The position numbers and the translations under genes are program-made. The notes under the pieces are model-generated. The model saw only the letters and a program-made list of their open reading frames with translations. It was not told the origin of the DNA and did no database searches. DNA of 64,000 bases, taken from Polymyxa betae A26-41 (taxonomy: Eukaryota; Protista; Endomyxa: Phytomyxea). Positions within the stretch are counted from its first letter, which is position 1; each line of letters opens with the position of its first letter. The stretch is from contig RBZT01000546.1 in the NCBI GenBank assembly GCA_003693705.1, positions 186,001 through 250,000 of the forward strand. Reading direction: 5' to 3'. Positions 32,391 through 49,758 of this stretch are shown here, in pieces.

Positions 32391-35300
32391 TTATTCGTTC
32401 TCACTATCATTATCTGAGTCAATATCAACATCTGCAGACCTCCTGGCAGCGTCTTGCGCAACGGACGTATCATCAGCATCTAAGACAAGTTACATCTGGA
32501 GTTAGCAGGATAATAATTGGTCTTACCGATTGCGACACAATGAGTGATCGCATATAATATCTTTTTGTGCATTACATCTAGAGTAGAATATCTGGGAAGC
32601 TCAAGAGAAAAGAAGCACGTATGAGAGATGGGAAGGTAATCGTCAGGGGACCGGTCGGCTTGGTGCATTCGACTGATTTTGAATTTCCTATCGAAGTCTT
32701 CCGGCTTTAATGGAAGTCGTGAACGTCCCCAAACAAAACGCAAGAACTGACAACGTTCAACGTCATCCAGTTTCTCACGAAGCATCTTCCAGAACAAAAT
32801 AATGTGAGGATCTTGACCCGAGCAAGATTCATAGACAGTCATTTGCTCAAGCAGTTCAATATTCATCTGTTGGAACTCTTAGATAGACATACAACGCTAC
32901 GTTTGGCAAATACTTTTGGGCGCCCACAAACTTCAACTTCCAACTCGTGCCATGTAAAAAGAGATAGCAACGGGTAGGGAACGACTGTGGCAAGGCCACG
33001 TTTAATAGCTTCGCATTGTATCTTGAATTCGTTAAGCCGATAATGAATCAAAGCTTTTGAGAACTGATGCCGATTCTCCCAAGTTACCTGTTTGCGACAA
33101 TCAGACATGGAATTCAAGAGGGAAGGCACTTCCGTACTTGAATATGGTGTCCTCCAGGAACCAGAGGATAAATCCTTTGATCTGATCCAATGACAACGAA
33201 TTTGGAGTTCACGCAGGCAGTGAAATACTCGGGTGGAAGGTCTCCGCTGTTTTCGAACTTCTTCAATTCGTCTAGGATTTTAAACGACAAGAGGTCGATT
33301 GAAAGAACATCCTCTTCTGTGATTACGTCTGAAACTAGTGGCTTCCAAACAACGGATGGCAAATCAAGATCCAAAACCTAAGCGCCGTAATCAGTTACTT
33401 CAATTATTAGCCTGAAATCTTATAATACATTTTTTGTGCGAATCGCTAATCCCATCAGTTTCCCGACAAATTCGTACATCGCAAGATGAAGTGGACTGAC
33501 AGAAGAGGGACGCGGTACGAATTTCTCCCTGTTGGTACCAATATTTTCGCGGCCGTTGGGACACCTTATGAACAAAGGCAGTAGGTCGGAATGCAGCTCA
33601 TTGCAGAAGTCTTCAATAGAATTACGGTAAGGGCCACCGTAATCATCACTAAATTCTCCTTTGAATACAGTCTTCCAGGCACATTTGCTCTTCTCGAGCC
33701 GGAACATCTTTGGGTCACGATTGTTCAATTGCTGGAACGCCTGCCCAAACAGAGACCTTTGACCTTTAACATCCATTTTTCGAGATTCTCTTAACTTAAC
33801 AGCCCGGAAACGATCAAGTTCTAATTCCCGGTCCGAAGGCGAGCATTTTGTCTCCTCCAAGGCGCGGTTCCAAAGAACTTCTTTGGTCCGGAAGAATATC
33901 AAACCACGAATAGCCCGAATACCGTCAGCCAGAGTCGACATGCCAGCTGGAAGGGAGAAGTCGACTAAGCTCATCATTGAAGAAATCTGAACATTAAGCT
34001 GCTGAATCGTGAAAAGACGGATTTGCAGTTCCCTCAAAGGAATATCTTCAAGCAAACGGTATGGAAGTAGATCCTCTTGCTTGACCTCCAGTTCGTTTGC
34101 TTTCATATGTATTGGATCGAGAGTGGATTTCTCTACCAAACGATTGATCATGTGGACCAAATCCTCATCTCCAGCTCGGGAGAACTTAGACATGATTGCA
34201 TCAAATTCAGAAAGATCGGAGTCATCAGCTGCGTTCATCTTGGCCTTTTCGCTTGGCCAGGAACTGATCGTTTTCCAGATCTTTTTTGAAAACGGCCTTG
34301 GCAGAGGTTCCTTCATCAGAATACATCGAACAATGTTATCGACGAGCAAAACTGAATCGAACCAAGGCTTATTGCGTTGCTTGTTCTTGGTCTGATGCTT
34401 CGTACGCTGGCCAGTTCGAACAAGCATTCGGCCATAAATCTCAAATCCTGATAACGCTAGATACCAGTGATCATTTGAATTCTTTCCGAACATGAAAATT
34501 CGAAACTTGCTATAAGACTCGGCGGGCTGGTTCATGCTAATATCCCATGTATGGCTTTGTCCTTTCTTTTGTAAAGAGCAATCATCACGATGTTCTCTCA
34601 GACAAACCCAATTTGATCCATCCGTACTGCCTTCCAGCCGCCAGTTTCGAAGCGCCTCAGTATCATAAGAATTGTAATGACGAAGAGTGTACTTGGTAGG
34701 AATGATTCTCCTATCGAGGAAATCGATAACAAACCATTGGTCTTGATTAGGCTGAGAAACACAACGTACTGATTCTCTTCCAACAATCGCCGATTTAGGA
34801 GCAGAGTTATGCTGAAGCGAACATGCCTCGACGCGGACTAATCCCATATCGGCAGGATTCTGCCAAGTATCTGTCAGTTCATTGGTACCCAAATAGTACA
34901 GAATTCCATTCGTATCGAGATCAGCGGCATACACAAACTCTTTCTCTTCTTCTTCCCAAGCCAGAGCATCTCCATCAAGTGTTCCGTAGATCTCAAAACC
35001 AGAAAGTGATAGGTACCAATGCTGGTTCGAGTTCTGGTCAGTCATTATAATGCGGAACTGAGAGTACGATTCTTCAATGCCAGTCAAAGACCAGGAGTGG
35101 GATTGCCCTTTTCGGCAAAGAGACGTATCGTTCCGGTGCTCCTTCAGTACAACCCAGGTGACGCCATCGTTTGACCCCTCCAACTTCCAGCTGCGTAAAG
35201 CTTCTGTATCCCAAGAAGAGTAATGTCGGAGCGTATAATAAGTTGGCGTGATGGAATGATCCAGAAAATCAACGATAAACCATTGATTGGGCATCGGTTT

Positions 35301-38300
35301 GGTAACACATCTGACCGCTTCTCGGCCAACCAGTGCAGATGCTGGTTTCGAATCCAGCATTAATGATGACGCAGTGACTTTAACCACGCCGAGCTCGGAA
35401 GGATTCGCCCATGCAGTAGTATTCTGGTTTGTCCCAAGGTAGTATAAGATGCCATTCGTGTCCATATCCTCTGAAAATGCGAATTGAATACCCTGCTGGG
35501 CGGGATCATCTGAAACAGCAGCCTGGAGACTCTCTGCTGGAGCTGCGGGCGATGCCGCAATTTCAACTGGAGCGACGCGGTCTTCATCGAGGGATTCCTC
35601 TTCAATCGCAGCTTGTCGCTGAATCTTCATTAGCTCAATTTTCTCCATGGAAACGTTCAATTCGATCAGTGCCTGGAAAAAAGAAGAATAGATTCCTTTG
35701 CTGCTCTGGGCAACATGCATATGGTTCATCAAATCTTTTAGAACGCAAGATCTGCTGGAATCAAACTGGATACCAAGCCGGATGAGATAAGAAAGAAGCC
35801 GGACAAATGATAGGCGTTGATCGCCAGAAGAGACAGCAATGACTTCGAATATCAGGTTAACAACAGGACCAGAGAAAACGATGCGACCCAAATGGCCTAA
35901 TGCTCTCATGGTCGAACTGTCTTTTAATTGGGAATTGTCTTCTGTTAATGATAACAGAACATCTTTCGACTTATCTCCTGGAGATATATTGATCGGCGAC
36001 TCATGGACGAAGTCGGTAAATATATTTAGAATCCAGATTATGAGTCCAGGATTCGGTTGACAAAGAGCATCGGCTTCGCTCAATATCTTGGAATGCGGAT
36101 CTGAAATAATACCTACCATATGGTTGAGCGCTTCTGCTAGCAGCTGCCGAGCAACTGGTGCAAATTGTCTTAGAATCGATATTGAGAGCAGCTCTTGGTT
36201 CAAAGGACCGTTTGCAGAGAGAATTCTGACAGACTGAGAAGCAGAGATAACTTCTGAGATTGTTGAATCTTCACGTTCCAGTATTTTATGAATGGATGCT
36301 CTTAAAACATCCAATCCATCGGTAGGTTGCGAAAATTCAATCAGGCGAATGAATTTCACCAAGAAATCGTCATCGCCAAAAACTCGAAGAGATAATGGAT
36401 TAGCCGGGGGCCAATTTTGCAGCATTTGCAAGATACATCTTCTTGAATATGTGATTGATAACGCTTCTTCCGTCGCTGCCATCGCAGAATACAGCTCGTT
36501 CTTGTTCAAAGTTTGTAGTTCGGGGTAGTCAACGGTTCTTTTGGGGATGCTGCGCTGCACCAGTTCGTCCAGAGAGGCTTCCATAGATTCTTTTGTCGAC
36601 TTCAGAATCTTGAATGCAGCATTAGTGCTTTCACTTTTTTCAATATTTAGATTTCGCTGATGATCGTCTTCAGAGTTGCCAGATGTGTAAGACGAATTGC
36701 CATCATCATCACAGTGATCTGCATCTGTAAAGTTGTCGACATTATCAAGAAGGTAAAGAATTGCAGCCGATGTGTTGTTCGAGGTTTTCGATAAGGCAAC
36801 GGCGCATAGCTTCCTTGGAAAACCCATAAGGCTCAAAGTTAGGGCAGCTTTGTTATGTTCTTCTAAACGATCTTCGGTTTGCAGCGCGGCAGCATTTTTT
36901 AAAACATAATCGCTTGCCAGCCTTCGGTCCATAGAATTTGATACCAAGGCTTTGGTGCACCACCGCATTGGGTAGCCCATTTTCAAAAGAGAACGAGCAA
37001 CAATATTGATGTCGCGACCATCTTCGAGCGGATCTTCTGCCGATCGCAATCGGATAGCATTAGACTGAGAAAGTGGCTTGCTGCGAAGCTGAACACGTCG
37101 TAGATACACTGGAACGGAATTGCCTTTGCACAAATCGAATGATAGAGGAAGAGAAAATGGTCCGGATCGAGCTAGGAGGTGATCGTCCCCGGCCAAGGAT
37201 GTTGCCAGCATACCATTGATGAACACAAAAATTTGACCCTTTTGTAAATCAACAGAGAACACGACACGGTACCAAACATTAGGGAAAATTTTACGGGTCG
37301 ATTTTTTTCCAGAAACGCGCCCCAGAATATCGAACCTGCCGTCAGGCTTGACAGCAATGCCGGCGGACGAGCACTTGATAAGATTGCAATCAGAATTAGC
37401 AGGTAGAGTTGGAATGTTAACATCCATAATAACGGAATAGCTGTCCATGTAGGGTTTTCGACCTAATGTTCTTTCGATATTGATCCAGGCATTAGGAAGC
37501 ACCGAGATAAAGAATTCAGAATCGGAATGACTTTTAGACAAACCGATGATATCACTGATTTTGACGTGATTGCTGCTGTCAGAAGAAAACTGGTAGTATT
37601 CCACATCTCCCATCGGTTTGAGAGCAGCTGTTGTCTGTTTAGAATCAATATTGTATGTCTGCACATGCATGACATGCAAAGTTGTTTCTTCATAATCCGC
37701 ATGGCAAAATTCAAGCGAGGATTGGCAAAGGTCATGAACTTGCTTGGCGTCTAAAGCGATGCCCCAGATTCCAGCCTCTCTAAATTGGCCGTTAATTCCA
37801 GAGCAGAACAATGTTGTTCCACTTAATGGCAACAAACGACTAACATCAAATCTCATTCCTAGGAAAAGATTAACAGAGAATCAGTACACAAGAAACATGG
37901 ATACAGTACCCTTTGTAGGAATAACTAACGAGCATACCAACGCACCGTCGATGAAAGCAGAAACACAGACTGTGCGTTTCTCAGATACACTTAATCCTCT
38001 TCGGTCAATTACAAGAACAGCATGATGCCATTCATCGCCTATGTCTTCAAGAATGATCTCCTCAGATATATCAGATGATCCGCCATCGGAAATGACTAAT
38101 TGTAATTGACGGAAACTTGAGTCGCAAAGAAGTTGGGCAGAGCTGTTTGTCTCCGGCATAGTTATGGAAAGAAGCGAAGAAATTGACTTGGTCGGGAATA
38201 ATACATTTTGTGATGGCTTGAAACGAACACATACTGTGACACCAGGAGCGGGCATCTGAGGGTCGCACTTGAAGCTTGAAGACAGACCACCAGAAATGCT

Positions 38301-41300
38301 AGGAAATAGTCCCCCATGTTTCAAATCTTCATCGACAGTAATTGGACCTCTATAAACGGCTTGAACATCATTAACGAAATTGCGAGCTTCTTGACGCTTG
38401 CGAGCATCTTCTTCCAAAAGCGCATCCTGGGGAGACTTGCGTTTCTCGTTGAGTCTGGTCTGTTCCATGTCCAGTGGAAGTTCGTCTAAATACCCGTAAG
38501 CAGCGAGGAATTCAATGTCGATATTCGTCTCTTTGGTTCTAGGCTCAATAAGCTTGAAGAGCACATACTTTCCTGCTCGTATCAGGTCGCATTGCACAAA
38601 CGCGTTGGTGGATGCTGAAAGATCTACAAAGGCGACTGGCTCGACCGCTGAAGGCTCAGAATCTTCAGCTTGTTTCCTTGAGATGAAAGATGAATACTGG
38701 GAAGCGGTGAAATTGTTAAATGGCTCTGTGGACGCGACCTCAGATAGATCATCAAGAACGAATACCAAAGCTGAAAGCAGAGGTGCAGTAAACGTCTCCG
38801 GGTCTGGGTTTCTTGCCGAAACAGCAGTCAGATAGACAATACGGCCTATAGGTTCTGGCTCAGCAATGATGTTCACATTGCGTTTTGCAGTAGTGCAGTA
38901 AACGTCCTCATTATCCAAGAATACATTAGCCGCTTTGTAATCGTCACTGTGTTGTCCACCGTCAGTCGACAGCAATGACAGTTCGAGGCGAGGAGCGCGA
39001 GAAGCTGGAATTATTGGGCATTTTACAGCTGCAAATCCGATAAAGAACTTCGAAGGAGGCCCTAACAAAAAGGCTGACTGAGGATAAGGAGGATATGTGA
39101 CATCTGTTGCCCCAATAGCAACAATAGGAGTTGGAGGAACTTTTTTGGGGGATTCACAGGAGACGGCATAGTTCGCCTTGTCCCCACAGACTACATACTG
39201 GAAAGACAAATTCGGAACGGGAAATTCCACTTTCTTGGGCACTCGACTTTCAGAGCCAAGTAATGATCCCCAGAGCCAAAGTTCTCCTTTTTCAGTGACT
39301 GCACAGGTATGCGACTGACCACCATCGATCCAGACGATGCGTTCTTTGCCAATTTCGTCCACAAGCAACTTGGGGGTAGATTCATGATTTGTAGTGCCAT
39401 TTCCAAGAACACCACTCGGATTTCCTCCCCAAAGGTAGGCTTCGCCATCTTTTGTAAGAGCCATTGAGTGATCCCAGCCGGCTGATATTCTGACCACGAC
39501 CTTGTTCTTGAAAGCTTGAACAAGCCTAGGTGCAAGAATATTTTGGTTCGTTCCATGGCCGGTAGCAGGCCGAGAGCCTTCATAGCCGTTTCCCCACGAA
39601 TACAGCTGCCCACTGCTGGTCAGGGCCATCGAGTGATCCCAGCCACCTCGAACTTCGACAAAAGATGGACAATTTTGCACTTTTTCGGGCATGAGCTTCT
39701 TTTTTGCAGTAGAGTTCAAGCCAAGCTGTCCCCTCAAATTGCGACCCCACGAATACAGCTCTCCTGAAGCCGTTAAAGCAAGGCAGTGGAATGCACCGAC
39801 GCCGATACGAGTGACCTCAACAAACTCCAAAATGCCTTTGACTTGAATAGGCACCTTCTGGTCTGACACAGACCCATTACCCATCTGACCTTCGTTTCCC
39901 TTTCCAAATACCCACACGTGATGGTCGGAGTCTAAAGCAGCTGAGAACGAATTACCGGCACAAACTTGGACACAAGTGACGTGTTCAAGGGCCTGGACTA
40001 ATTTTGGCCTGGTTACAGAAACTGTATCCCCATGACCTAACCGTCCTTCTTGGTTGTTACCCCAGCTATAGATTTGACCATTTTCGGTTAAAGCCAGAAC
40101 ATGCTGATTGAAACATGAAACAGACGCCACAAGACGACCGTCGAAACCGTCAATCAGTTTGGGGATCTGAACAGCACTGTTGTTTCCATGTCCCAGGCGA
40201 CCAGCACCACCGTGTCCAAAAGAATATACTTGGCCGGGCTCGATTTCAGTTTGAGATGACGAAGCGGCAACTGTTGTTGTCAGAAGATCAACGGCCCCAG
40301 AAACTGAGGTCATTGCAGAGCTGGCAAATGACATTCCCAAACTCTTGGATGAATGATCACGACGTAAGATGCTGTTATCTATCGGCAAATGGCCATCAGC
40401 ATTGAGGTCAACAGAAGATGCGACGCCATCGCAAAACTCTGCAGACTCGACACTGGAGCGCGAGACCGAACGGATCTCAGCTATCCCTTCAAGAAGCTCA
40501 CCGTATATCTCAAAACCGCTCAAGGAAAGATAGTTGTGGTTGTTGGAATTCTTTCCAGTCATCAGAATTCTGAAATGTCTGAAAAACTGAGTGATTCCAG
40601 GAAGATCCCATGAATGCGCTTGGCCCTTCTTGTTCAAAGAAGTATCATCAACATGTTCGCGTAAAATGACCCAATCTGATCCATCGGTAGAGCCTTGAAA
40701 TCGCCAGGATCGAAGAGCTTCAGTGTCCCAAGAAGAGTAATGGCGTATTGTATACTTGTTCGGACGGATGAGATACTTCTTGAAATCGATCGCAAACCAA
40801 GCGTTGTTCATGTCATTGCATAGGCAGCGAACTGCTTCTCGACCAACTACGGCAGATACATGATGCGAATCAGCTTTTACTTTGGCAACAGTAACTTCGA
40901 CTAGGCCCAATGTCATTGGATTCTGAAAAGTGCTTGTTCCATTCCGGCAGCCTAAGAAATAAACAATTCCATTTTCGTCCATATCCTCGTGATACGTGAA
41001 TCGACGAATTTTCACTCTTTTTACTGGCCGCTCCACTAATCCGATTGACTGCAGATGCGTTGTAGTTGTTCCGAAAAACGCTATGGCACCATAATGCGGT
41101 TGACAGACGATGCTGCGGATGTCGACCATATCCTCATCTTTGATTAGGCGACCAAAAGCGTGAACAGAATCGTGATTGGTGGTAAGAATCAAAGTTGCAA
41201 TAACCACAGCATCCGGGGCGCCTGCAATCGAAGAGGTTCCAGCATATATTTCAGACAAAGGAGCTGTAACGGCTTCGACACGCACAATAAATTCGTCGGA

Positions 41301-44300
41301 TTTCAAAGACACAACATTAGCTGTTCCCGAATCATTTGCGCTTCCCGCATGCCTTGGAGCCATTTCGGTGTTGGAATCACCGAGAGCGTAGGACACCCGA
41401 ATTCCGAAAACACAGCGCTGATCAGCCCAAATGCAAATTTCAGAAATACGTGCGTCCATAGAGCTGGATATAGTTTGCTCGAGGAAAAGACCATCATCAA
41501 ATGCTGCAATATTTACTCGCCCTTGATCAGAGGCACCAAGTGCCCTGGAGTAGTGAACATCGCCAAAGAACCTTTAATGAGGTAAGATTGATACGATCAA
41601 TTTGACTTGACGACGTACCTTAAAGTGGCTCCTTTCTCATCAACGCACTCGGGATCGTGTAACTCACGCCTTCGTTTTTCTAAGGCAAGGGCTCTGGGCT
41701 CTAGATTACTGGTCATGTTGATAAGTCCATCAGCCAATGGCTCAGACACAGAGAGTGCCTTTTTGCCTATCAGTTGCCCATATCCTGCTTCAATAAACAA
41801 GGCCACGAATTCGGGGTTTTCAAATAAACTTAAAAGCACTTTAAGTGCCTGGCGCTGAATCTGCATGAAAATCTGCCGAGCAGTTTGGAATCGGCAAATG
41901 TGTTTCGTAACAGTAGCTGATAAAAATTTCCCAAGTATCTTGATTAATTCGGCAGGATTTTTGACATGCGAAAGCGACAGTTCAACGTTGGAACGGGCTG
42001 TAAGCTGAGCGAGCTCGGAAACAGTAGCATCCTCTCCGTTATCCAAATTAATTACGAAGACAGATCCCTTATTCTGCTCCCGAATCATCCGTGTTACTGT
42101 GCCTTCTAACGACTGGCTATCGGTAGATTCATAGACAACACGGGCTCCCTGCCGTACAGACTCGATGTTTCCTCCAAGAACAGACAAAGCCGACACAGCG
42201 CGTCGGACGCTGGTGCAGAATTCCGAGGGAACAAGAGGAGAATTCCAGTCTAAATCTTTTGCACGTTGCATGCGCATAGATTGACAAAGCGAATCGAGCT
42301 CAGCAGGAAGAGAGGACAAATTTTGCAAACCGCTCCATAAGACTTCATTGAAAAGACTCTTCCATAACGTTGACCGAATCAGAACGCGAGACAGTGATAC
42401 GTATTCGGATCCAATAGCATCACTCTCAATGCTCCAGGGTACAAAACGTAGTTGTTGTACAGTTGGCTTGTCTCCAACCCAGGCATAGTAACCGTCAGGA
42501 CATTTTTGCAGAAACTTGGACGGATCGAAGATAAATCGAATACATTCACCAGCAGACATAGAGATTGCAGGAAATGCAGCCATGCTCCCATTTGCTTTAA
42601 GATTGTTGAAGGCCACACCAAGATCAGTTCCACAAAGTGTGTAACGAAGCTCCCCATCATCCATATTCAACAGGACTCCAACGACATCGCCTACTTTCCA
42701 AGGCACAGGTCCTCCATAAGAGGAACAGCCATCATGCCACTTTTTTCCACGCATCCCATCATAGGCCCATGAAAACTTGTCGTCACCAACACCATCACCA
42801 GCGCCAACAGGAGCAAATTCCGCTTTAACAAATCCAATTTGTTGTAATCCAGCTGTCTCAAGGACTGCCTCGAAATACCACTTTCCAGAGGTAACCGATA
42901 CGTCAGCAACTGCAGTAGCGAAACCAGTGGCAGCCTTCAAACGATGCCATCCATCAATGTCGATTGTCCCTCGTTTCACGGAGAATGACAGTGATGTAGG
43001 TCCTGATCTCGCACCACATCGTTGCTTATAGTGCAACAAAGAAGCCTCGATGGCGGCTTTACGGTTGATCGCCTCGGTTTCTTCAGCTTGACTGTGTTCG
43101 GATCCGCCATCACAATTGTTGCTTCCAGAACGAGGAGGCAAGTGGAAACTTGCTCCAGCTGCTCTGTCGAGAAATTCTACGATCAGACTGGATTTCTTAG
43201 AGAGAGCTGATATGCCTGGAACAGTGGTGGTATTGTCTGAAAATTCAGATGGCAATTCTGATCCCGAAATTAATCGATCATCACTCGGAGATATTCCTGG
43301 AAGGATATAACGGCATATTCGCACAGCTAGAAGTTTGCCCACAGGAGATCCGTGAGCGGCTACATCTAGAATGATTTTAATCCAGGATCTGGAAGAAAGA
43401 ATTCTTTGAACAGCAGGAAACTGACAGCTACGAAGCAGTAGCCAAAGATACTGATTGAAGAACGCATCGAACTCACCAACGACAGGAGGCTCTTTACGAA
43501 TTAAAGGACGACCTCGAAGACCAACATCATCAAAATGATTTTTGTACCAATACACAGAAGCGTCACCAAGATTCGCTTCCCGTATGCGGATTTGCCATGA
43601 CGATCGATCGACTTCAACAACTCGATGATCTTCCTCGGTTGGAGTTGGTTGCAACATGGTAACCTTGGACTGGTACCCAGTCATTGAAACTGCTGCATAA
43701 ACGGGACCCGTAAGATTGTCAAAAGCGATGCCTTGGGAAGCCCCATTCTTCATAAACTCAATAGTGCCAGCATCAAAATCCAGCTGAACTCCAATTGTGT
43801 CACCAGCAGTGTATGACGCACCATAAGGTCTGTTTGTAGAAGAATTGTAGTTCTTGTGACCAAGACCGCCGATATAGCCCCAACCTCCTTGCGAGCCGAT
43901 CCAAGTACTGGCATTATTGATCATGAAGCGATGAGGAACCACCCCAACAATGAATTTCCATGAATTACTTCCATTGCCGTCATAATCAATTCGGAACTCG
44001 ATCAGGTGTCGATCTGACGAGTAAGTTTGAACTCCCTTAACGGTATGCCACGATTCAGTGTTGTTTGTGTGCATCACTGTAACAGGCTTGTCAGAGTTAG
44101 GGCCACTAAACTCGATCTCTCTGGTATCACGCGTGTCCCAATAATCAGGTGACATTTCCGATTGCCTGTCAGGGTGCTGTTTCTTCGAAGAAATGTATTC
44201 CGCGTCGCCGTCCAGAATACCATAGATTTCAAATCCAGATAGTGCTAAGTACCAATGCTCGTTAGAATTCAAACCAGTCATGTATATCCGGAAATGAGAA

Positions 44301-47300
44301 TAGGATTCTGTAATATTCGGAATGTCCCATGTGTGTGTAGCTCCCCTCGTATTCAAAGAGCGGTCATTGCTATGGGAACGCAGTGTGACCCAGTTATGTC
44401 CATCATTGGAGCCTTCAAGATTCCAGAAACGCAACGCTTCAGTGTCCCAAGAAGAATAATGCCTCAGCGTGTAATGCGTTGGAATAATTGAATGCTCCAA
44501 AAAGTCAATTACAAACCATTGGTTGGGACTGGGCTGGGAAACACATCGAACAGCAGTACGGCCAACAACAGCAGAAATAGGATTGGAATCGCTTTGCTGA
44601 GATGATGATGTAACAGAGACGACACCTAAATCATGGGGATTGCGCCAAGCTTCAGTACCGCCACACGTTCCAAAAAAGTATAAGATGCCTTTCGTATCAA
44701 AATCCGATTCATAAACGAACTCTTGCCCTTTGTGCTCAAATTCTTCTGGCTGGACGTCTTCTTTGGCTAACTTTTCATTATCCGGGAATGTCAGCATACA
44801 GATTTCGCATTCGAAAGTAGGGCGATCATTAAAAAATGTGCAACGGCGGCAGTACCAATTTGACGGGTGTGCACTGGCAGAATCGATTTGCATAGAATCT
44901 TGTTCATTGGGATTCACTGAAAGGGTATCGGATTGCAACTGCTTATGTTGCCTCATCTTCCAAACCAAAGACATTTGGTTCAAAGTGGCATGAAAGATCT
45001 CATCCAGACACTCGAATGATGGAGTAGGCAGACTGGAGGCTGCATAAGCAAGCATTCTGACTAGTGACCATGCTGCAAAACGAATATTCCATGGACATGA
45101 TCTCAGCTCTCCATTCAACCGAAGATCCTTACACACCTCTTGATCAGCTAGTATGGCACGATTGCTGCCAGGGAAAGCAACAAAAGGCGTCAAATAACGA
45201 GTGATGCCGATCCGATGAAGTAGCTGCAAATCATGAGGGCCGAATTCGATATTACAAAGATCAATTAGGTGTAGTTTAGAGACATCGTCTAAATTCCCTC
45301 GAGCAATTAAGGAGCCAGCAATATCGAAATATGTTTCCGATAAATAGTCAGTGATGACAGGACCAACAGTGGGAATGCTCGAAGTGAAGTGTCTCTTGAT
45401 AATTTTGGAGGATTTGTTCCCTGGCTCGGGTGATTGTCGAAAAGCACCATTGAAGTGAAGCAACAGCTCTGGCAAAAGACCATCAGATTTGACTGATTTC
45501 ACTAAAACAGAAAAGTAGTGCAATCCAATCAAGCGCATAACAGCGCGAGAGCGTTGAATGATCAAACCATCCATTGTAGCTTCCAAATCGACATGACGAG
45601 CAACAATAAACTTGATAACAGAGCGGATCAGAACAGATTCCGGATCTTGCTTAACAGATGCTAAACGGGTTCTAACTAACATTAGCTCTTTTAACCTTCG
45701 AAGAGCTTTCATTGTGTTCTTCAGCAACTTGGTCATCACTTTGGACTGACTCCATTTGTTTGTTTTCTGCATCATTAACATCGGACCAGTAAGCTCAGTG
45801 ATCGAGTTAGATCTAGAAACACTCAATGAGCTAAAGCCCGAGTCGCATTCAACTGTGGCATTTCTGTCGATGTGATCAAGCTGACTGGCAGATACATGAC
45901 CTTCATCGCCTGATGTTAAAGCAACTAATGAAGCTGCAGCTTGTATGACAGGGCCATCTTCTATGTTCATTCCTTTGAGGCCTGCGGACGAGGCAGAATG
46001 AGTGCCGGACGCATCAGAGTCGCCAGTTAATTTTGGCTCGGATTCAAAGATAAATCCAGAATCGGCACGAATGGGCAATAAGAAATTGACACGATTCTTG
46101 ATGACAGTCAAGCATTGTTCTATATCTTCACCTTGGGCTTTTAAAGAACGTAATTCCAGCTTCATTTCTTGAGCCTTTTTCCACAATCGTAATATGCTTT
46201 CAGGCGCTTTACTATTATCCCCCTCGGAAACTGTAGTCATAGCTAGATTGACACGATGCGTAAGCTTTAGAAGGACGGCAAACACTCCTGCAACGGCTTT
46301 ATTTGCGTGGTCTAGGATGGAGCGTTGAACGATGTGACGATCTGGCATCAAACGATTGAGCTTTGACAGCAGTATCTGCCCGTTGCCGGTGTCATTAATA
46401 ATGTTCTGAAGAAATGCCATTTCGTGAGATTGCGGTTCCAGCGAGGATGGCGAAGATTCAGCGCCCAAATGGGTATCACTATTTAACACCGCAGGGAACA
46501 ACTGAGAGATATTGATATCCACTTCCAAGAGAGAAGGGAGAAGACATGGAAATAATGGATGCGTTGGCTCAACACCGGATTTAAAAAGAACCAAGACAGA
46601 TCCCTGTAATTCCTTTTCTGCAACTGAGGCTGGCGGTCCAGAAATTAGTGAGGACCCCATCTTTCCACATAACCAGGAAATGTTCTGGGTAAAGTCGCCA
46701 AGCCATGACAAAGGGGTGACAATGACAGTGCCCAACACTGTTAAACGGTAACCCCATCCAGTGCCACTTCCTCCAGAATGAAAGTAAACCACGACAGTGT
46801 CTCCATTGACAACAATAGATTCAGCAGGCCAGTTACTGCCATCTGCAGGACCGTAAAGGCATTCAGTAATAGGATCTCTCTTGTTTGGAGACTTGTAAAG
46901 CTGAACGTAATCCTCTTCTGACTGTGTGCTGCATTTGGCTATATCAAATGTGACAATTAAAGACTGAGCATCTTTGATCGTGATGATTTCTTCACGATCA
47001 ACGTTATTCCGATACGGATGACGGCTTTGAACAGTGCGCTTCTTGTCAACAGACATCTCGTCTTCGGGTTGGTTAATCTCACGAACCAACGACCAAAGGC
47101 CATCGCACTTCAGGAGAAATTGAGACACAAAAGGAAGTAATTTTAAGGCCATATCAGATCCGTCAACCTGCTCTGTAAATACGCTGAGAGCGGCAATTAA
47201 AGGCCTCGTTAATTTGCAGATGAGCGATTCTCGCAGAATGTCTTCTCCAACACGACGCAATCCTTCAGAGGTTTGGTCTTTGTCAATTATATCATAAGCG

Positions 47301-49758
47301 AATGTGATAACGCCCAAAGATGCATCGATTAGGTTCCTGGAGTACTCCCAAACGACGTTCAATACTGCATTGCTGATGCGAGCCTTTTCCGGATCGTGTG
47401 AAGTTCCATCGTCTTCATGAGGGCCACCATCGACGTGAGCTTGCAAAGAGCCGGGTAGGGATGATGCACCGTCTGTTGCTGCGGCGCCTGTTGACGAACC
47501 CAGAGCTGCTGGCGCCGAAGCCTCACTACTGATAGCATTATTCGGTACTATGCCAGCTGCTACATCATTGTCGTATACTAAATCCGATGACCGTGATGAA
47601 GCCGAGACATTTGCAGCCGCTCGATCCTCTTCGGTAGAATTGGAATTGTTGTCCGCAGCTAAACTTGACAAACGAGATGTGTCCCCGGGATGAGAGCCTT
47701 CGGAACCATCAAAAGAAAGATTTAGGTATGACCCAGCCCTCGAAAGCAGATGTTTCTGGAAACTCTGTAATATCAGCAAAATATTCGACTCATGGTGGGT
47801 TTTGCCTGGAGATTTTAAAGCCGACTCAACTTCATGAACACTTGCAGAGATGAGACTTTTCAGAACTTCCATAACAACTCGACTAGAATTTGCAGGAGGA
47901 TCTTGTGTGCAAGCTTGCTCGAGTTCATCAAGCAGCAGAGATCCTGAACTGAAGGATGAAAATCGAGATAGTAATAGTTCAAAAAGATCCTGCTCTGGAC
48001 TAGAGAGCGCCTGGCTTCTGCCATTGCCAGCAGAATTAAACTTGTCAATAAGTCTTCCCAGATACACGACTTGGTCGGAGACAGAGGAATAGAAAAATTC
48101 GAAGGCTTCAGCTAGAATTTGGGCGGCTTCTGATTGCACAGCTTCAGAAACAGCCAGTGCTGTATTGCTGACCAGACTATTTGGCCTCGGAGCCGACGGT
48201 GTCTCCAAGAACTTGAAGATCTGCTTACGAATACGATTAACTGCAGATGTGGAAATATGGAACTCGTTCTGTGGAAGCTTAGCACGAACCGTTTGGTACA
48301 GATGGACTTTCAAAATCCGAAGACATGCAACAAGTATATACATATTGGAAATATACTTTGAATCTGGACAAGCGTCACATGAAAAGTATCCTGGCGATAC
48401 AATGTCAATGATGTCTGATAAAGCAGACAAAGTTTCAGGTTTGACATCAACACATAAAGGTTTGTACAGCACAGCAAGACGATTGGGATCATCATTCCAA
48501 ATGTCTTCGTCCGGTTGCCGAGCGTATGGCTGAGATAGCCGATCGATCTGAGATATGACGATAAGGGTAGCCAAACGACCATCAACAGCTTCGTCGCCCT
48601 CTAATGATTCCAAATTTTGTGCGTATCGTTGCATTATTTGGTCAGGCGTTGAGGGAAAAACGCCATTATCGTTGACTGCCTTAGATTCTTCGGATAGCTG
48701 TGAGCCATCGCCAGACTTTTTCTCGTCATCATGAGTGTAAAATGGGAACTGCATACCCGTGCTGCTTCGACGCCGAGCACTTAGTACGTTAGGTCCGACA
48801 ATGGACAAACTATGCCTTCGCTCCGCCGCTTGAATGGCTGATTTTGAATTGCTGTCAACAGACTGCAGTGAAGGTGCATTTTGTTGAGCGCGTCCATTAG
48901 GCCGATAATTAATGATATAGCGTAGTGCATCCATCACATCGCGACCTTTGCCAATCTGATCGCTAACTAGAAGAACCCTGCACAATGAGAGAAATTCGAC
49001 AAGAGATCCACGAGCAAGCGCCACATTAAACAGAACCTTGGCGGCTTTGGCCCGCCTTTCAAGTGAATGGCGATTGTCAGTAACCAGGGCTCTGATATAA
49101 TCCAAAAGCGGACTCAAACCGCTTGCAATATCTGGACTAAAATTTGGACCATCAATTAGCGTTAGAGGAGCAGTATCATCCAGAATTTCGCACAAAAGGC
49201 TCAGAATATCATCGACAACATTTGCATCAGAGTGTTGGGCAGACTTGATCAATATCAAAAACATTTTTACCGATGTTTTGATCCCAATCTTCGCGCTTGC
49301 TGGTAGCGGCGGCGCGTCAGTTTCGATCCGATTTTTTAACGCACTGGCACTGGCCTGGGTTCTATTTCGATCCCGAATAATTTCTCTCCGAATTGCATTG
49401 TGGATTTTTTTGATCGCATGAATGCGTTTGTCAATTTCTGTTGAATAAGTATTTGCTTTTCTGTCATTGCTAAGGGCAGCAATATCGTCCATCAGTTCAT
49501 GCTGAACTTTCTTGGTATGGGGACGAAATCCGAATACCGGTCCAGTGGCTTCTGCTCTGGTGGTGAACTTTCTGAACCGAATACGCTTATAATCGCGTGC
49601 ATTTCTCTTTAAGAACCCATCCTCAAAAAGCTCATCATTACAGGCGACAAGCCTATTTCTTTAAATCAGCACGAAAATGACCAAATCATTTGCAATTACC
49701 TCTCATCAACCTCGTCGTTAATGCCAACATCTTTGATGACAGTGGGGTTATTTCCCAT
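32391..49758 (-). CDS. Giant HERC-like HECT E3 ubiquitin ligase (~5,600-5,700 aa, ~9 exons)
   Basis: ORFs 41597-49492, 37881-41459, 33420-37856, 33114-33374, 32863-33129 and 32480-32866 are separated by short GT-AG intron-like gaps. HECT motifs: FKGEFSDDYGGPYR, FVGKLMGLAIR, FLRFVWGRSRLP, LPISHTCFFSLELPRY. Also RCC1 repeats, SPRY domains and the large-HERC-like N-terminal LARGSL motif. Confidence 0.92.
34430..44720 (-). repeat. Four internal protein-level repeats of a HECTD1-type discoidin/F5-8C-like domain (~44220-44720, ~40495-41005, ~34980-35485, ~34430-34940)
   Basis: Each copy carries D-x-x-GI-x-Y-x-x-G...NP...GR-x-x-VRC...WF-x-x-DF...YT-x-RHY-x-S-x-DTEALR-x-W-x-x-x-GS-x-DG-x-x-W...LSGFEIYG. 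Confidence 0.9.

Follow-up and report, generated by a model that had tools for sequence, protein, structure and literature searches.

The window analysed here, a stretch of 64,000 nucleotides from contig RBZT01000546.1 of Polymyxa betae A26-41, contains on its minus strand (32391-49758) what is very likely one gene, expressed, whose product is a giant and active-looking ubiquitin ligase of the HECT type. The gene has eight exons and seven introns, and its predicted product of 5,675 residues joins a C-terminal HECT domain to a long series of putative recognition modules. This domain combination is new: a full-text literature search found no paper describing HECT together with jacalin, SPRY and RCC1, in line with the first-pass annotation of this DNA, which knew of no characterised ligase with such a combination.

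Gene structure and transcript support

On the minus strand six open reading frames (ORFs), three of them very long (2,631, 1,192 and 1,478 codons) and the others short, follow one another from 49492 to 32480. When the gaps between the ORFs are read, all seven introns are GT-AG, measure 47-51 nucleotides (nt) and restore the frame. The summed exon lengths give a coding sequence of 17,028 nt, that is 5,675 codons and a TAA stop at 32393-32391; searches were made with single exons, and the total length comes from this arithmetic. An orthologous protein, P0006 (5,333 residues, from a 47-kb Logan contig), was found by an exhaustive profile search with residues 1-1200 of exon 4. The parts of the gene are as follows.

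49758-49700, minus strand: exon 1, the first 19 codons and 2 bases, beginning MGNNPT
49653-49699, minus strand: intron 1, 47 nt, GT-AG, frame restored; P0006 ORF unbroken at the same point
49652-41619, minus strand: exon 2, 2,677 residues
41572-41618, minus strand: intron 2, 47 nt, absent from the RNA-derived contigs of runs X3 and X8
41571-37910, minus strand: exon 3
37859-37909, minus strand: intron 3, 51 nt, absent from the X3 and X8 contigs; loose ends in run X9 agree
37858-33429, minus strand: exon 4
33378-33428, minus strand: intron 4, interrupting HECT
33377-33138, minus strand: exon 5
33088-33137, minus strand: intron 5, interrupting HECT
33087-32914, minus strand: exon 6
32867-32913, minus strand: intron 6, interrupting HECT
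32866-32527, minus strand: exon 7
32480-32526, minus strand: intron 7, preceding exon 8
32391-32479, minus strand: exon 8, a 29-residue acidic tail beyond the HECT C-lobe, then the stop

For the RNA check, 37000-42999 was aligned to four public runs. In run X3 a single contig of 10,291 nt spans 37000-42932 and leaves out precisely the 51 nt of 37859-37909 and the 47 nt of 41572-41618; both segments are bounded by CT..AC as read on the plus strand, and so by GT..AG in the direction of the gene. Run X8, which comes from a different study, contains both the intron 2 and the intron 3 joints. Run X24, of raw reads, has no read in this region and so bears on neither side. Since the X3 contig bridges both gaps between the long ORFs with the introns removed, the large exons are carried on one RNA. 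Below 37000 this contig continues for 4,456 nt, the length that spliced RNA ending 42 nt past the stop would have, which is consistent with the splicing of introns 4-7. The window has a guanine plus cytosine content of about 44%, and a root metatranscriptome contains part of the stretch.

P0006 is colinear with exons 2-7, at 42-76% identity in exon-by-exon BLASTP comparisons.

Exon 2 residues 1-651: P0006 residues 21-713, 45% identity
Exon 2 residues 747-2667: P0006 residues 707-2571, 42% identity
Exon 3 residues 23-944: P0006 residues 2605-3446, 44% identity
Exon 4 residues 140-1475: P0006 residues 3788-5073, 50% identity
Exon 5: P0006 residues 5075-5152, 63% identity
Exon 6: P0006 residues 5154-5210, 74% identity
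Exon 7: P0006 residues 5212-5324, 76% identity

The matches pass from exon to exon without a gap in P0006, which supports introns 4-6, and the offset of 20 residues at the start corresponds to exon 1 and its split codon. The P0006 ORF, otherwise continuous over 16 kb, runs off after ...HCVAI-G, at the exact position of intron 7; of the seven introns, this one is apparently shared with P0006, which lacks the other six. The Pfam order in P0006 is Sad1_UNC, two SPRY, jacalin, Sad1_UNC, RCC1-like domain (RLD), UBA, two F5/8-C and HECT, the last in one piece (E 1e-62). The one protein of about 5,600-5,700 residues that the first-pass annotation had assembled by hand is thus borne out, at 5,675 residues, by the RNA contig and by a colinear orthologue.

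HECT domain and family placement

The following features define the C-terminal ligase domain.

32528-33608, minus strand: HECT, with Pfam HECT positions 3-53, 57-135, 131-193 and 195-300 on successive exons
32615-32617, minus strand: codon of the catalytic cysteine, Cys5617, in ...SHTCF...

Across the four exons positions 3-300 of the 306 in the Pfam model are covered, so that both the N-lobe and the C-lobe are complete. The sequence ...SHTCF... aligns with ...AHTCF... around the catalytic cysteine of HUWE1, and the catalytic residue (codon 32617-32615) is intact, as had been claimed. Most HECT domains stop within a few residues of the end of the C-lobe; the tail encoded by exon 8, which is strongly acidic and runs 29 residues past that point, could be regulatory. 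The closest solved HECT N-lobe is that of HECTD3; residues 441-615, 619-690 and 754-855 of HECTD3 correspond, in succession, to parts of exons 4, 5 and 7 (E 9e-7, 0.23 and 1e-10, respectively). A word search found SPRY together with HECT in five of the nine nearest HECT relatives. The closest non-orthologous HECT found belongs to P0001, a protein of 4,268 residues with SPRY, CUB-like and HECT domains, whose C-lobe is 49% identical.

Class I HECTs comprise HERC1, HERC2, KIAA0614/HECTD4, HECTD3, HECTEx1, HECTAm1 and HECTHe1 (Grau-Bove et al. 2013, PMC3673628), and SPRY has been reported to be exclusive to this class (PMC3673628). LamG3 occurs with SPRY in HECTHe1 and HECTEx1, SPRY occurs with zf-RanBP in KIAA0614 of Phytophthora and Tetrahymena (KIAA0614 being present in Rhizaria), and choanoflagellate HERC2 has RLD, APC10 and SPRY; class I HECTs use SPRY, DOC, LamG3, RLD and UBA repeatedly for the recognition of substrates, and RLD, UBA and SPRY have been gained repeatedly, and more unusual HECTs are to be expected (PMC3673628). 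The window protein has the N-terminal SPRY that marks class I, in two copies. Because SPRY is reported to be exclusive to class I, the closest N-lobe is that of HECTD3 and five of the nine nearest relatives combine SPRY with HECT, the best reading of the sequence is a lineage-specific ligase of class I type, related to the large HERCs. An orthologue of HERC1 or HERC2 was considered and rejected: the protein has one RLD only, and Pfam found neither the WD40 repeats or second RLD of HERC1 nor the Cyt-b5, MIB-HERC2, CPH and ZZ domains of HERC2.

Beyond P0006, two remoter relatives were found. P0045, in assembly GCA_041443045.1, is colinear at 26-33% identity; it is a fragmentary ORF, and the contig that carries it has a HECT ORF farther downstream. 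P0016, a transcript from the foraminifer Nonionella stella, aligns with residues 17-1146 of exon 4 at 31% identity. A word search with the 2,677 residues of exon 2 returned only remote, SPRY-based matches in proteins of 1,472-4,685 residues and no close relative of that size. The P. betae genome itself has about a dozen HECT loci. Paralogous giant HECT genes at C941:146953-157044, C940:52158-61533 and C846:241556-248256 carry discoidin-like, SPRY and LamG/UBA modules; with the present gene, these at least three further giant HECT genes make up a family of giant ligases of mosaic build that is specific to this lineage. A search of the same genome with the DOC-like and first LamG-like regions found no paralogue.

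Modules upstream of the HECT domain

From the N-terminus towards the HECT domain, the regions of the protein are as follows.

47102-49651, minus strand: N-terminal region of about 850 residues, without family match, a possible HEAT/ARM-type α-solenoid; 45% identical to P0006
46742-47020, minus strand: CUB-like β-sandwich; Pfam CUB E 0.002, below cut-off
44798-44857, minus strand: NZF/RanBP2-type C4 zinc finger WYCRRCTFFNDRPTFECEIC, exact W-x-C-x2-C-x3-N-x6-C-x2-C
44183-44740, minus strand: discoidin/SUN-like module 1; Pfam F5_F8_type_C E 8e-10, alignment A1
43658-43957, minus strand: SPRY 1; Pfam SPRY E 6e-16, PDB match to the RanBP9/10 SPRY
42524-42883, minus strand: SPRY 2; PDB match to the ryanodine-receptor SPRY, E 2e-14
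41037-41450, minus strand: jacalin-like β-prism; Pfam Jacalin E 1e-8 (36 bits; cut-off 22), also in P0006
40461-41009, minus strand: discoidin/SUN-like module 2; Pfam Sad1_UNC E 2e-8, alignment A1
39264-40232, minus strand: RCC1-like domain (β-propeller); Pfam WD40_RLD E 6e-79, 266 bits, six RCC1 repeats
38436-39053, minus strand: DOC/galactose-binding-like candidate; language-model look-alikes, 30% identical to P0045
37677-38318, minus strand: LamG/ConA-like candidate 1, split by intron 3; sequence motifs only
37080-37508, minus strand: LamG/ConA-like jelly roll 2; Pfam Laminin_G_3 E 0.001 and a fold match
36726-37010, minus strand: two UBA-like three-helix domains; Pfam UBA_7 29.6 bits (cut-off 27) in two stretches, UBA E 0.002
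34962-35501, minus strand: discoidin/SUN-like module 3; Pfam, AlphaFold 2 model (predicted local distance difference test score, pLDDT, 96.6) and fold searches
34413-34961, minus strand: discoidin/SUN-like module 4; Pfam Sad1_UNC E 7e-9, alignment A1

All four discoidin/SUN-like modules match Pfam F5_F8_type_C, Sad1_UNC and F5_F8_type_C_2, and each passes the cut-off for F5_F8_type_C, for Sad1_UNC or for both. The modules are 54-64% identical to one another and about equally similar to the modules at corresponding places in P0006, a level of similarity which indicates that the four copies are old and strongly constrained; column identity over the four is 72%. A piece of 27 nt in module 2 (40716-40742) also aligns, with two mismatches, elsewhere on the same transcript contig, probably in module 3 or 4, so that the four modules keep short stretches of near-identical DNA.

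The AlphaFold model of module 3, which was built on 59 sequences, finds CBM32, muskelin and SUN2 in Foldseek at E 1e-7 to 2e-9. Its structural neighbours include the sugar-binding CBM32 and, at much the same closeness, the protein-binding domains of muskelin, SUN2, IFT25 and APC10 (TM-scores 0.55-0.66, 11-23% identity). The best matches among predicted structures are eukaryotic clusters with BTB or BACK domains, proteins of CUL3-adaptor type, such as the plant BTB/POZ protein At2g30600 (TM-score 0.88). The profile search with exon 4 collected 5,094 representative proteins at E up to 0.001, mostly by way of this module, which has about 175 residues, is some 45-55% identical across its carriers and follows the consensus D-x-D-x-N-G-I...N-S-N-x-H-x-Y-L-x-L-S-G-F-E-x-Y-G. 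Its partners in 37 longer carrier proteins are SPRY (12), kinases, RING/IBR, RanBP fingers, ankyrin and HECT. It is often found in tandem, and occurs in RBR and HECT ligases, BTB/BACK proteins and giant proteins with ankyrin, kinase and polycystin parts. The module thus appears to be a recognition element that ubiquitin ligases commonly use inside the cell.

Taken together, the two SPRY domains reach E 2e-36 in Pfam. The RLD, the strongest single domain of the protein, matches the RLDs of HERC2 and UVR8 in the PDB at E 1e-56. A PDB search with the jacalin-like piece was without match. The zinc finger has Thr-Phe after its second cysteine and Ile between the last two; such a Thr-Phe...hydrophobic arrangement is the signature of ubiquitin-binding NZFs. 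Its cysteine pattern is kept in P0006, and its Pfam matches are faint. The UBA pair adjoins the second LamG-like jelly roll and is conserved in five sequences. In a joint model of the two (mean pLDDT 64) the LamG core reaches 75-88 and the two helical triplets about 80; the jelly roll matches ConA-like folds (Foldseek E 2e-9, VIA Z 10-13.5) at the level of the fold only, its neighbours being LG domains, pentraxins, CBM40 and the N-terminal half of clostridial neurotoxin binding domains.

The remaining regions are recognised less clearly. Pfam at E up to 1 gave nothing credible in the N-terminal 850 residues, the middle region at 990-1590, the DOC-like region or the first LamG-like region. The DOC-like region has CEP104_N, ANAPC10, NR2C2AP and F5/8-C as language-model look-alikes (score 0.95); it is without a Pfam match, and a two-sequence profile was without a PDB match. 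The first LamG-like region shows the pattern W-H-x-V...F-I-D-G...G-x-F-x-E...W-G-x-A-L. Language-model look-alikes of the N-terminal region, weakly recognised, are TRRAP, MMS19, HEATR5A and PSME4. A ten-copy profile of the CUB-like domain (A6), with copies drawn from the window protein, P0006, P0001, P0005 and a protein of Phytophthora cactorum (P0157), matches the CUB domains of C1r and MASP at E 1.3e-4. The P. cactorum proteins P0157 and P0158 (about 3,920 residues) have at least five CUB-like copies (E-S-x-H-P-Y...W-G-[FY]-[KR]) along with MIB/HERC2 and Laminin_G_3, and no HECT is listed for them.

Most of the domain order read in the first-pass annotation has thus been recovered. The four discoidin-like domains hold on Pfam matches to all and a confident model of module 3, the two SPRY domains on Pfam and PDB matches at the positions given for them, the RCC1 propeller on its WD40_RLD match and six repeats, and the RanBP2 zinc finger on a perfect consensus. 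The two UBA domains are supported by two UBA_7 stretches and two modelled three-helix units, and the jacalin-like domain stands, as a fold, above its Pfam cut-off and is shared with P0006. The CUB-like domain is likewise found where it had been placed, with support of a weaker grade from Pfam and the C1r/MASP match. Other parts stood partially: of the two LamG domains the second is supported by Pfam and by its fold and the first is a lead from motifs, the DOC-like domain is a lead from its look-alikes without support from Pfam or the PDB, and of the HERC-like helical N-terminus the helical part survives as a weak solenoid lead, whereas a likeness to HERCs did not emerge.

Possible membrane association

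The predicted start, MGNNPT, is an N-myristoylation consensus (Gly2, Thr6), and the start of P0006, MGSAQS, keeps Gly2 and has Ser6. No 19-residue segment outside β-strand cores is transmembrane-like in hydrophobicity, and the acidic N-terminus is not signal-like. In consequence of the lack of a signal peptide and a transmembrane helix, all modules are expected to be cytosolic. A transmembrane or secreted protein is ruled out by the lack of a hydrophobic helix together with the start that is not signal-like. A single myristate beside an acidic stretch allows only weak, reversible membrane binding. The ligase had been described as membrane-bound; a peripheral myristoyl anchor is plausible from its conserved consensus, while the helix or signal peptide of an integral protein is absent.

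Proposed function and alternatives

It is reasonably probable that the protein is a scaffolded, multivalent HECT ligase for protein substrates, equipped with a ubiquitin-binding NZF and UBA domains and a reversible lipid anchor. In this model, the long helical scaffold would display about a dozen β-sandwich and propeller modules: the CUB-like domain, the four discoidin/SUN-like modules, two SPRY domains, the jacalin-like domain, the RLD, the DOC-like domain and two LamG-like domains. Together these may form a multivalent array of surfaces by which substrate or adaptor proteins are recognised, while the N-terminal myristate would allow reversible association with membranes. The NZF and the tandem UBA, which are of ubiquitin-binding type by sequence, as first noted, would bind ubiquitin, and might either hold substrates that are already ubiquitinated or steer chain extension by the C-terminal HECT. 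The lectin-type folds would serve as protein-binding modules, as in HERC2, HECTD1, HECTD3, APC10 and muskelin, and not as sugar sensors.

Some observations weigh against this picture. The DOC-like domain, the first LamG-like domain and the N-terminal scaffold have the standing of leads only. The RNA check was limited to its 6-kb region, and the gene model at 43000-49758 and 32391-36999 is drawn from the ORFs and the orthologue. Finally, the discoidin model lies near the sugar-binding CBM32 and the second LamG-like domain near CBM40 and LG domains, folds which are compatible with glycan binding.

An alternative, which is unlikely, is a HERC1-like regulator of membrane traffic, in which the RLD would engage a small GTPase or phosphoinositides at the membrane reached by the myristate, the ligase would modify trafficking components and the other modules would be secondary. 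The prominence of the RLD (E 6e-79), its resemblance to the RLDs of HERC1 and HERC2 and the myristoylation consensus are in its favour, and HERC1 is reportedly a clathrin-binding protein that acts on ARF1 (PMC3673628). However, the RLD is equally similar to UVR8, RCC1 and the HERCs, so that it bears no HERC1-specific signal; Pfam does not find the WD40 repeats of HERC1; and the twelve further recognition modules conserved in P0006 would be left unexplained.

Slightly less likely again is the reading put forward in the first-pass annotation, a membrane-anchored ligase whose lectin-type modules would detect glycans made accessible from the cytosol, as on ruptured compartments. Ubiquitin chains would then be assembled at these sites, in analogy to SCF-FBXO2/FBXO27. 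The lectin-type folds that it had listed are mostly real as folds (jacalin in Pfam, discoidin near CBM32, the second LamG-like domain near CBM40 and LG), and the conserved myristoylation consensus, the NZF and UBA of ubiquitin-binding type and the strong constraint on the four discoidin modules (72% column identity) would all fit. To our knowledge there is no universal sugar-site motif for the galactose-binding-like fold, and no sugar-site residues could be pointed out. For the jacalin fold the expectation is clearer: in mannose-binding jacalin-related lectins the sugar site is made up of two loops, the GG loop and a binding loop with the motif GXXXD (PMC4059138). The C-terminal binding loop of the jacalin-like domain reads FFGTTTTHLQSIG in the window protein and FFGSVNESGLGSLG in P0006, and in a by-eye alignment neither has the Gly...Asp pair. 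A GXXXD-like GSAND occurs in the middle loop of the domain (41331-41345); it is not kept in P0006 and is probably due to chance. The same folds, moreover, bind proteins in muskelin, SUN2, APC10 and IFT25, the discoidin-like module is common in BTB/BACK proteins, RBR and HECT ligases and kinases across eukaryotes, and myristate by itself binds membranes weakly, here next to an acidic N-terminus. Glycan sensing, the functional claim of the annotation, is not supported in view of the loss of the jacalin GXXXD in both proteins and the nearness of the discoidin module to protein-binding domains and BTB/BACK adaptors; nothing tested favours glycan binding.

More speculatively, and with a lower probability still, the discoidin/SUN-like module may be an ancient, very strongly conserved ligand sensor, its ligand being a molecule other than a protein, for example a glycan or another small cytosolic signal, and the ligase a multivalent sensor that ubiquitinates ligand carriers at membranes; this would be a generalised version of the idea in the annotation. 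That the gene is an artefact, two or more adjacent genes joined by hand, is scarcely credible: stops do separate the three long ORFs and the RNA alignment is confined to its region, but one RNA contig crosses both gaps with GT-AG introns removed (intron 2 cleanly so, which disposes of the break near 41500 that the annotation had named as what would refute it), a single orthologous ORF of 5,333 residues holds all parts in order, and the HECT and first LamG-like domains run on across the junctions.

Significance

The gene is a well-supported, RNA-confirmed example of how far modularity has gone in the giant HECT ligases of protists. Some fifteen domains can be recognised on one chain, in an arrangement that is kept in a second organism (42-76% identity) and has a partial, remoter relative in a third assembly. 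It corrects a probable annotation gap in a crop-associated, unculturable parasite. The discoidin/SUN-like module is abundant and highly conserved, and occurs in ligases of HECTD1, BTB/BACK and RBR type; its ligand would be worth finding. A glycan-sensing ubiquitin ligase is not established by this result.

Comparison with known ligases

SCF-FBXO2, SCF-FBXO6 and SCF-FBXO27 are cytosolic ligases that use a β-sandwich to recognise cytosol-exposed glycans. Unlike the window protein, they are cullin complexes of the RING type and bind sugar through a dedicated domain, FBA, which the window protein is without.

HECTD3 has a DOC-type domain upstream of HECT, where the window protein has a candidate for one, and it has the closest solved N-lobe, although the similarity is weak at the E values given above; it has only 861 residues and consists of DOC and HECT alone. 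HECTD1, a class II HECT, carries a Sad1/UNC domain (PMC3673628). The four modules of the window protein match the same Pfam family of galactose-binding-like domains. The HECTD1 domain presumably belongs to the same subfamily. HECTD1 differs in its ankyrin repeats and MIB-HERC2 domain, in having one such module as against four, and in its HECT class.

Among class I HECTs, HECTHe1 and HECTEx1 resemble the window protein in combining SPRY with Laminin_G3, and the KIAA0614 (HECTD4) proteins of Phytophthora and Tetrahymena in combining SPRY with a RanBP-type zinc finger. Compared by description, none of these combines jacalin, RLD, DOC-like, CUB-like and UBA domains with four discoidin/SUN-like modules. 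HERC2 shows a family likeness in being a giant HECT with an RCC1 propeller (matched at E 1e-56), SPRY and a DOC-type domain between RLD and HECT, for which the window protein has a candidate. It differs in its Cyt-b5, MIB-HERC2, CPH/Cul7 and ZZ domains, none of which was found in the window protein with its one RLD. Beyond the repertoire of HERC2, the window protein adds a jacalin-like domain, four discoidin/SUN-like modules, a CUB-like domain, two LamG-like domains, an NZF and two UBA domains.

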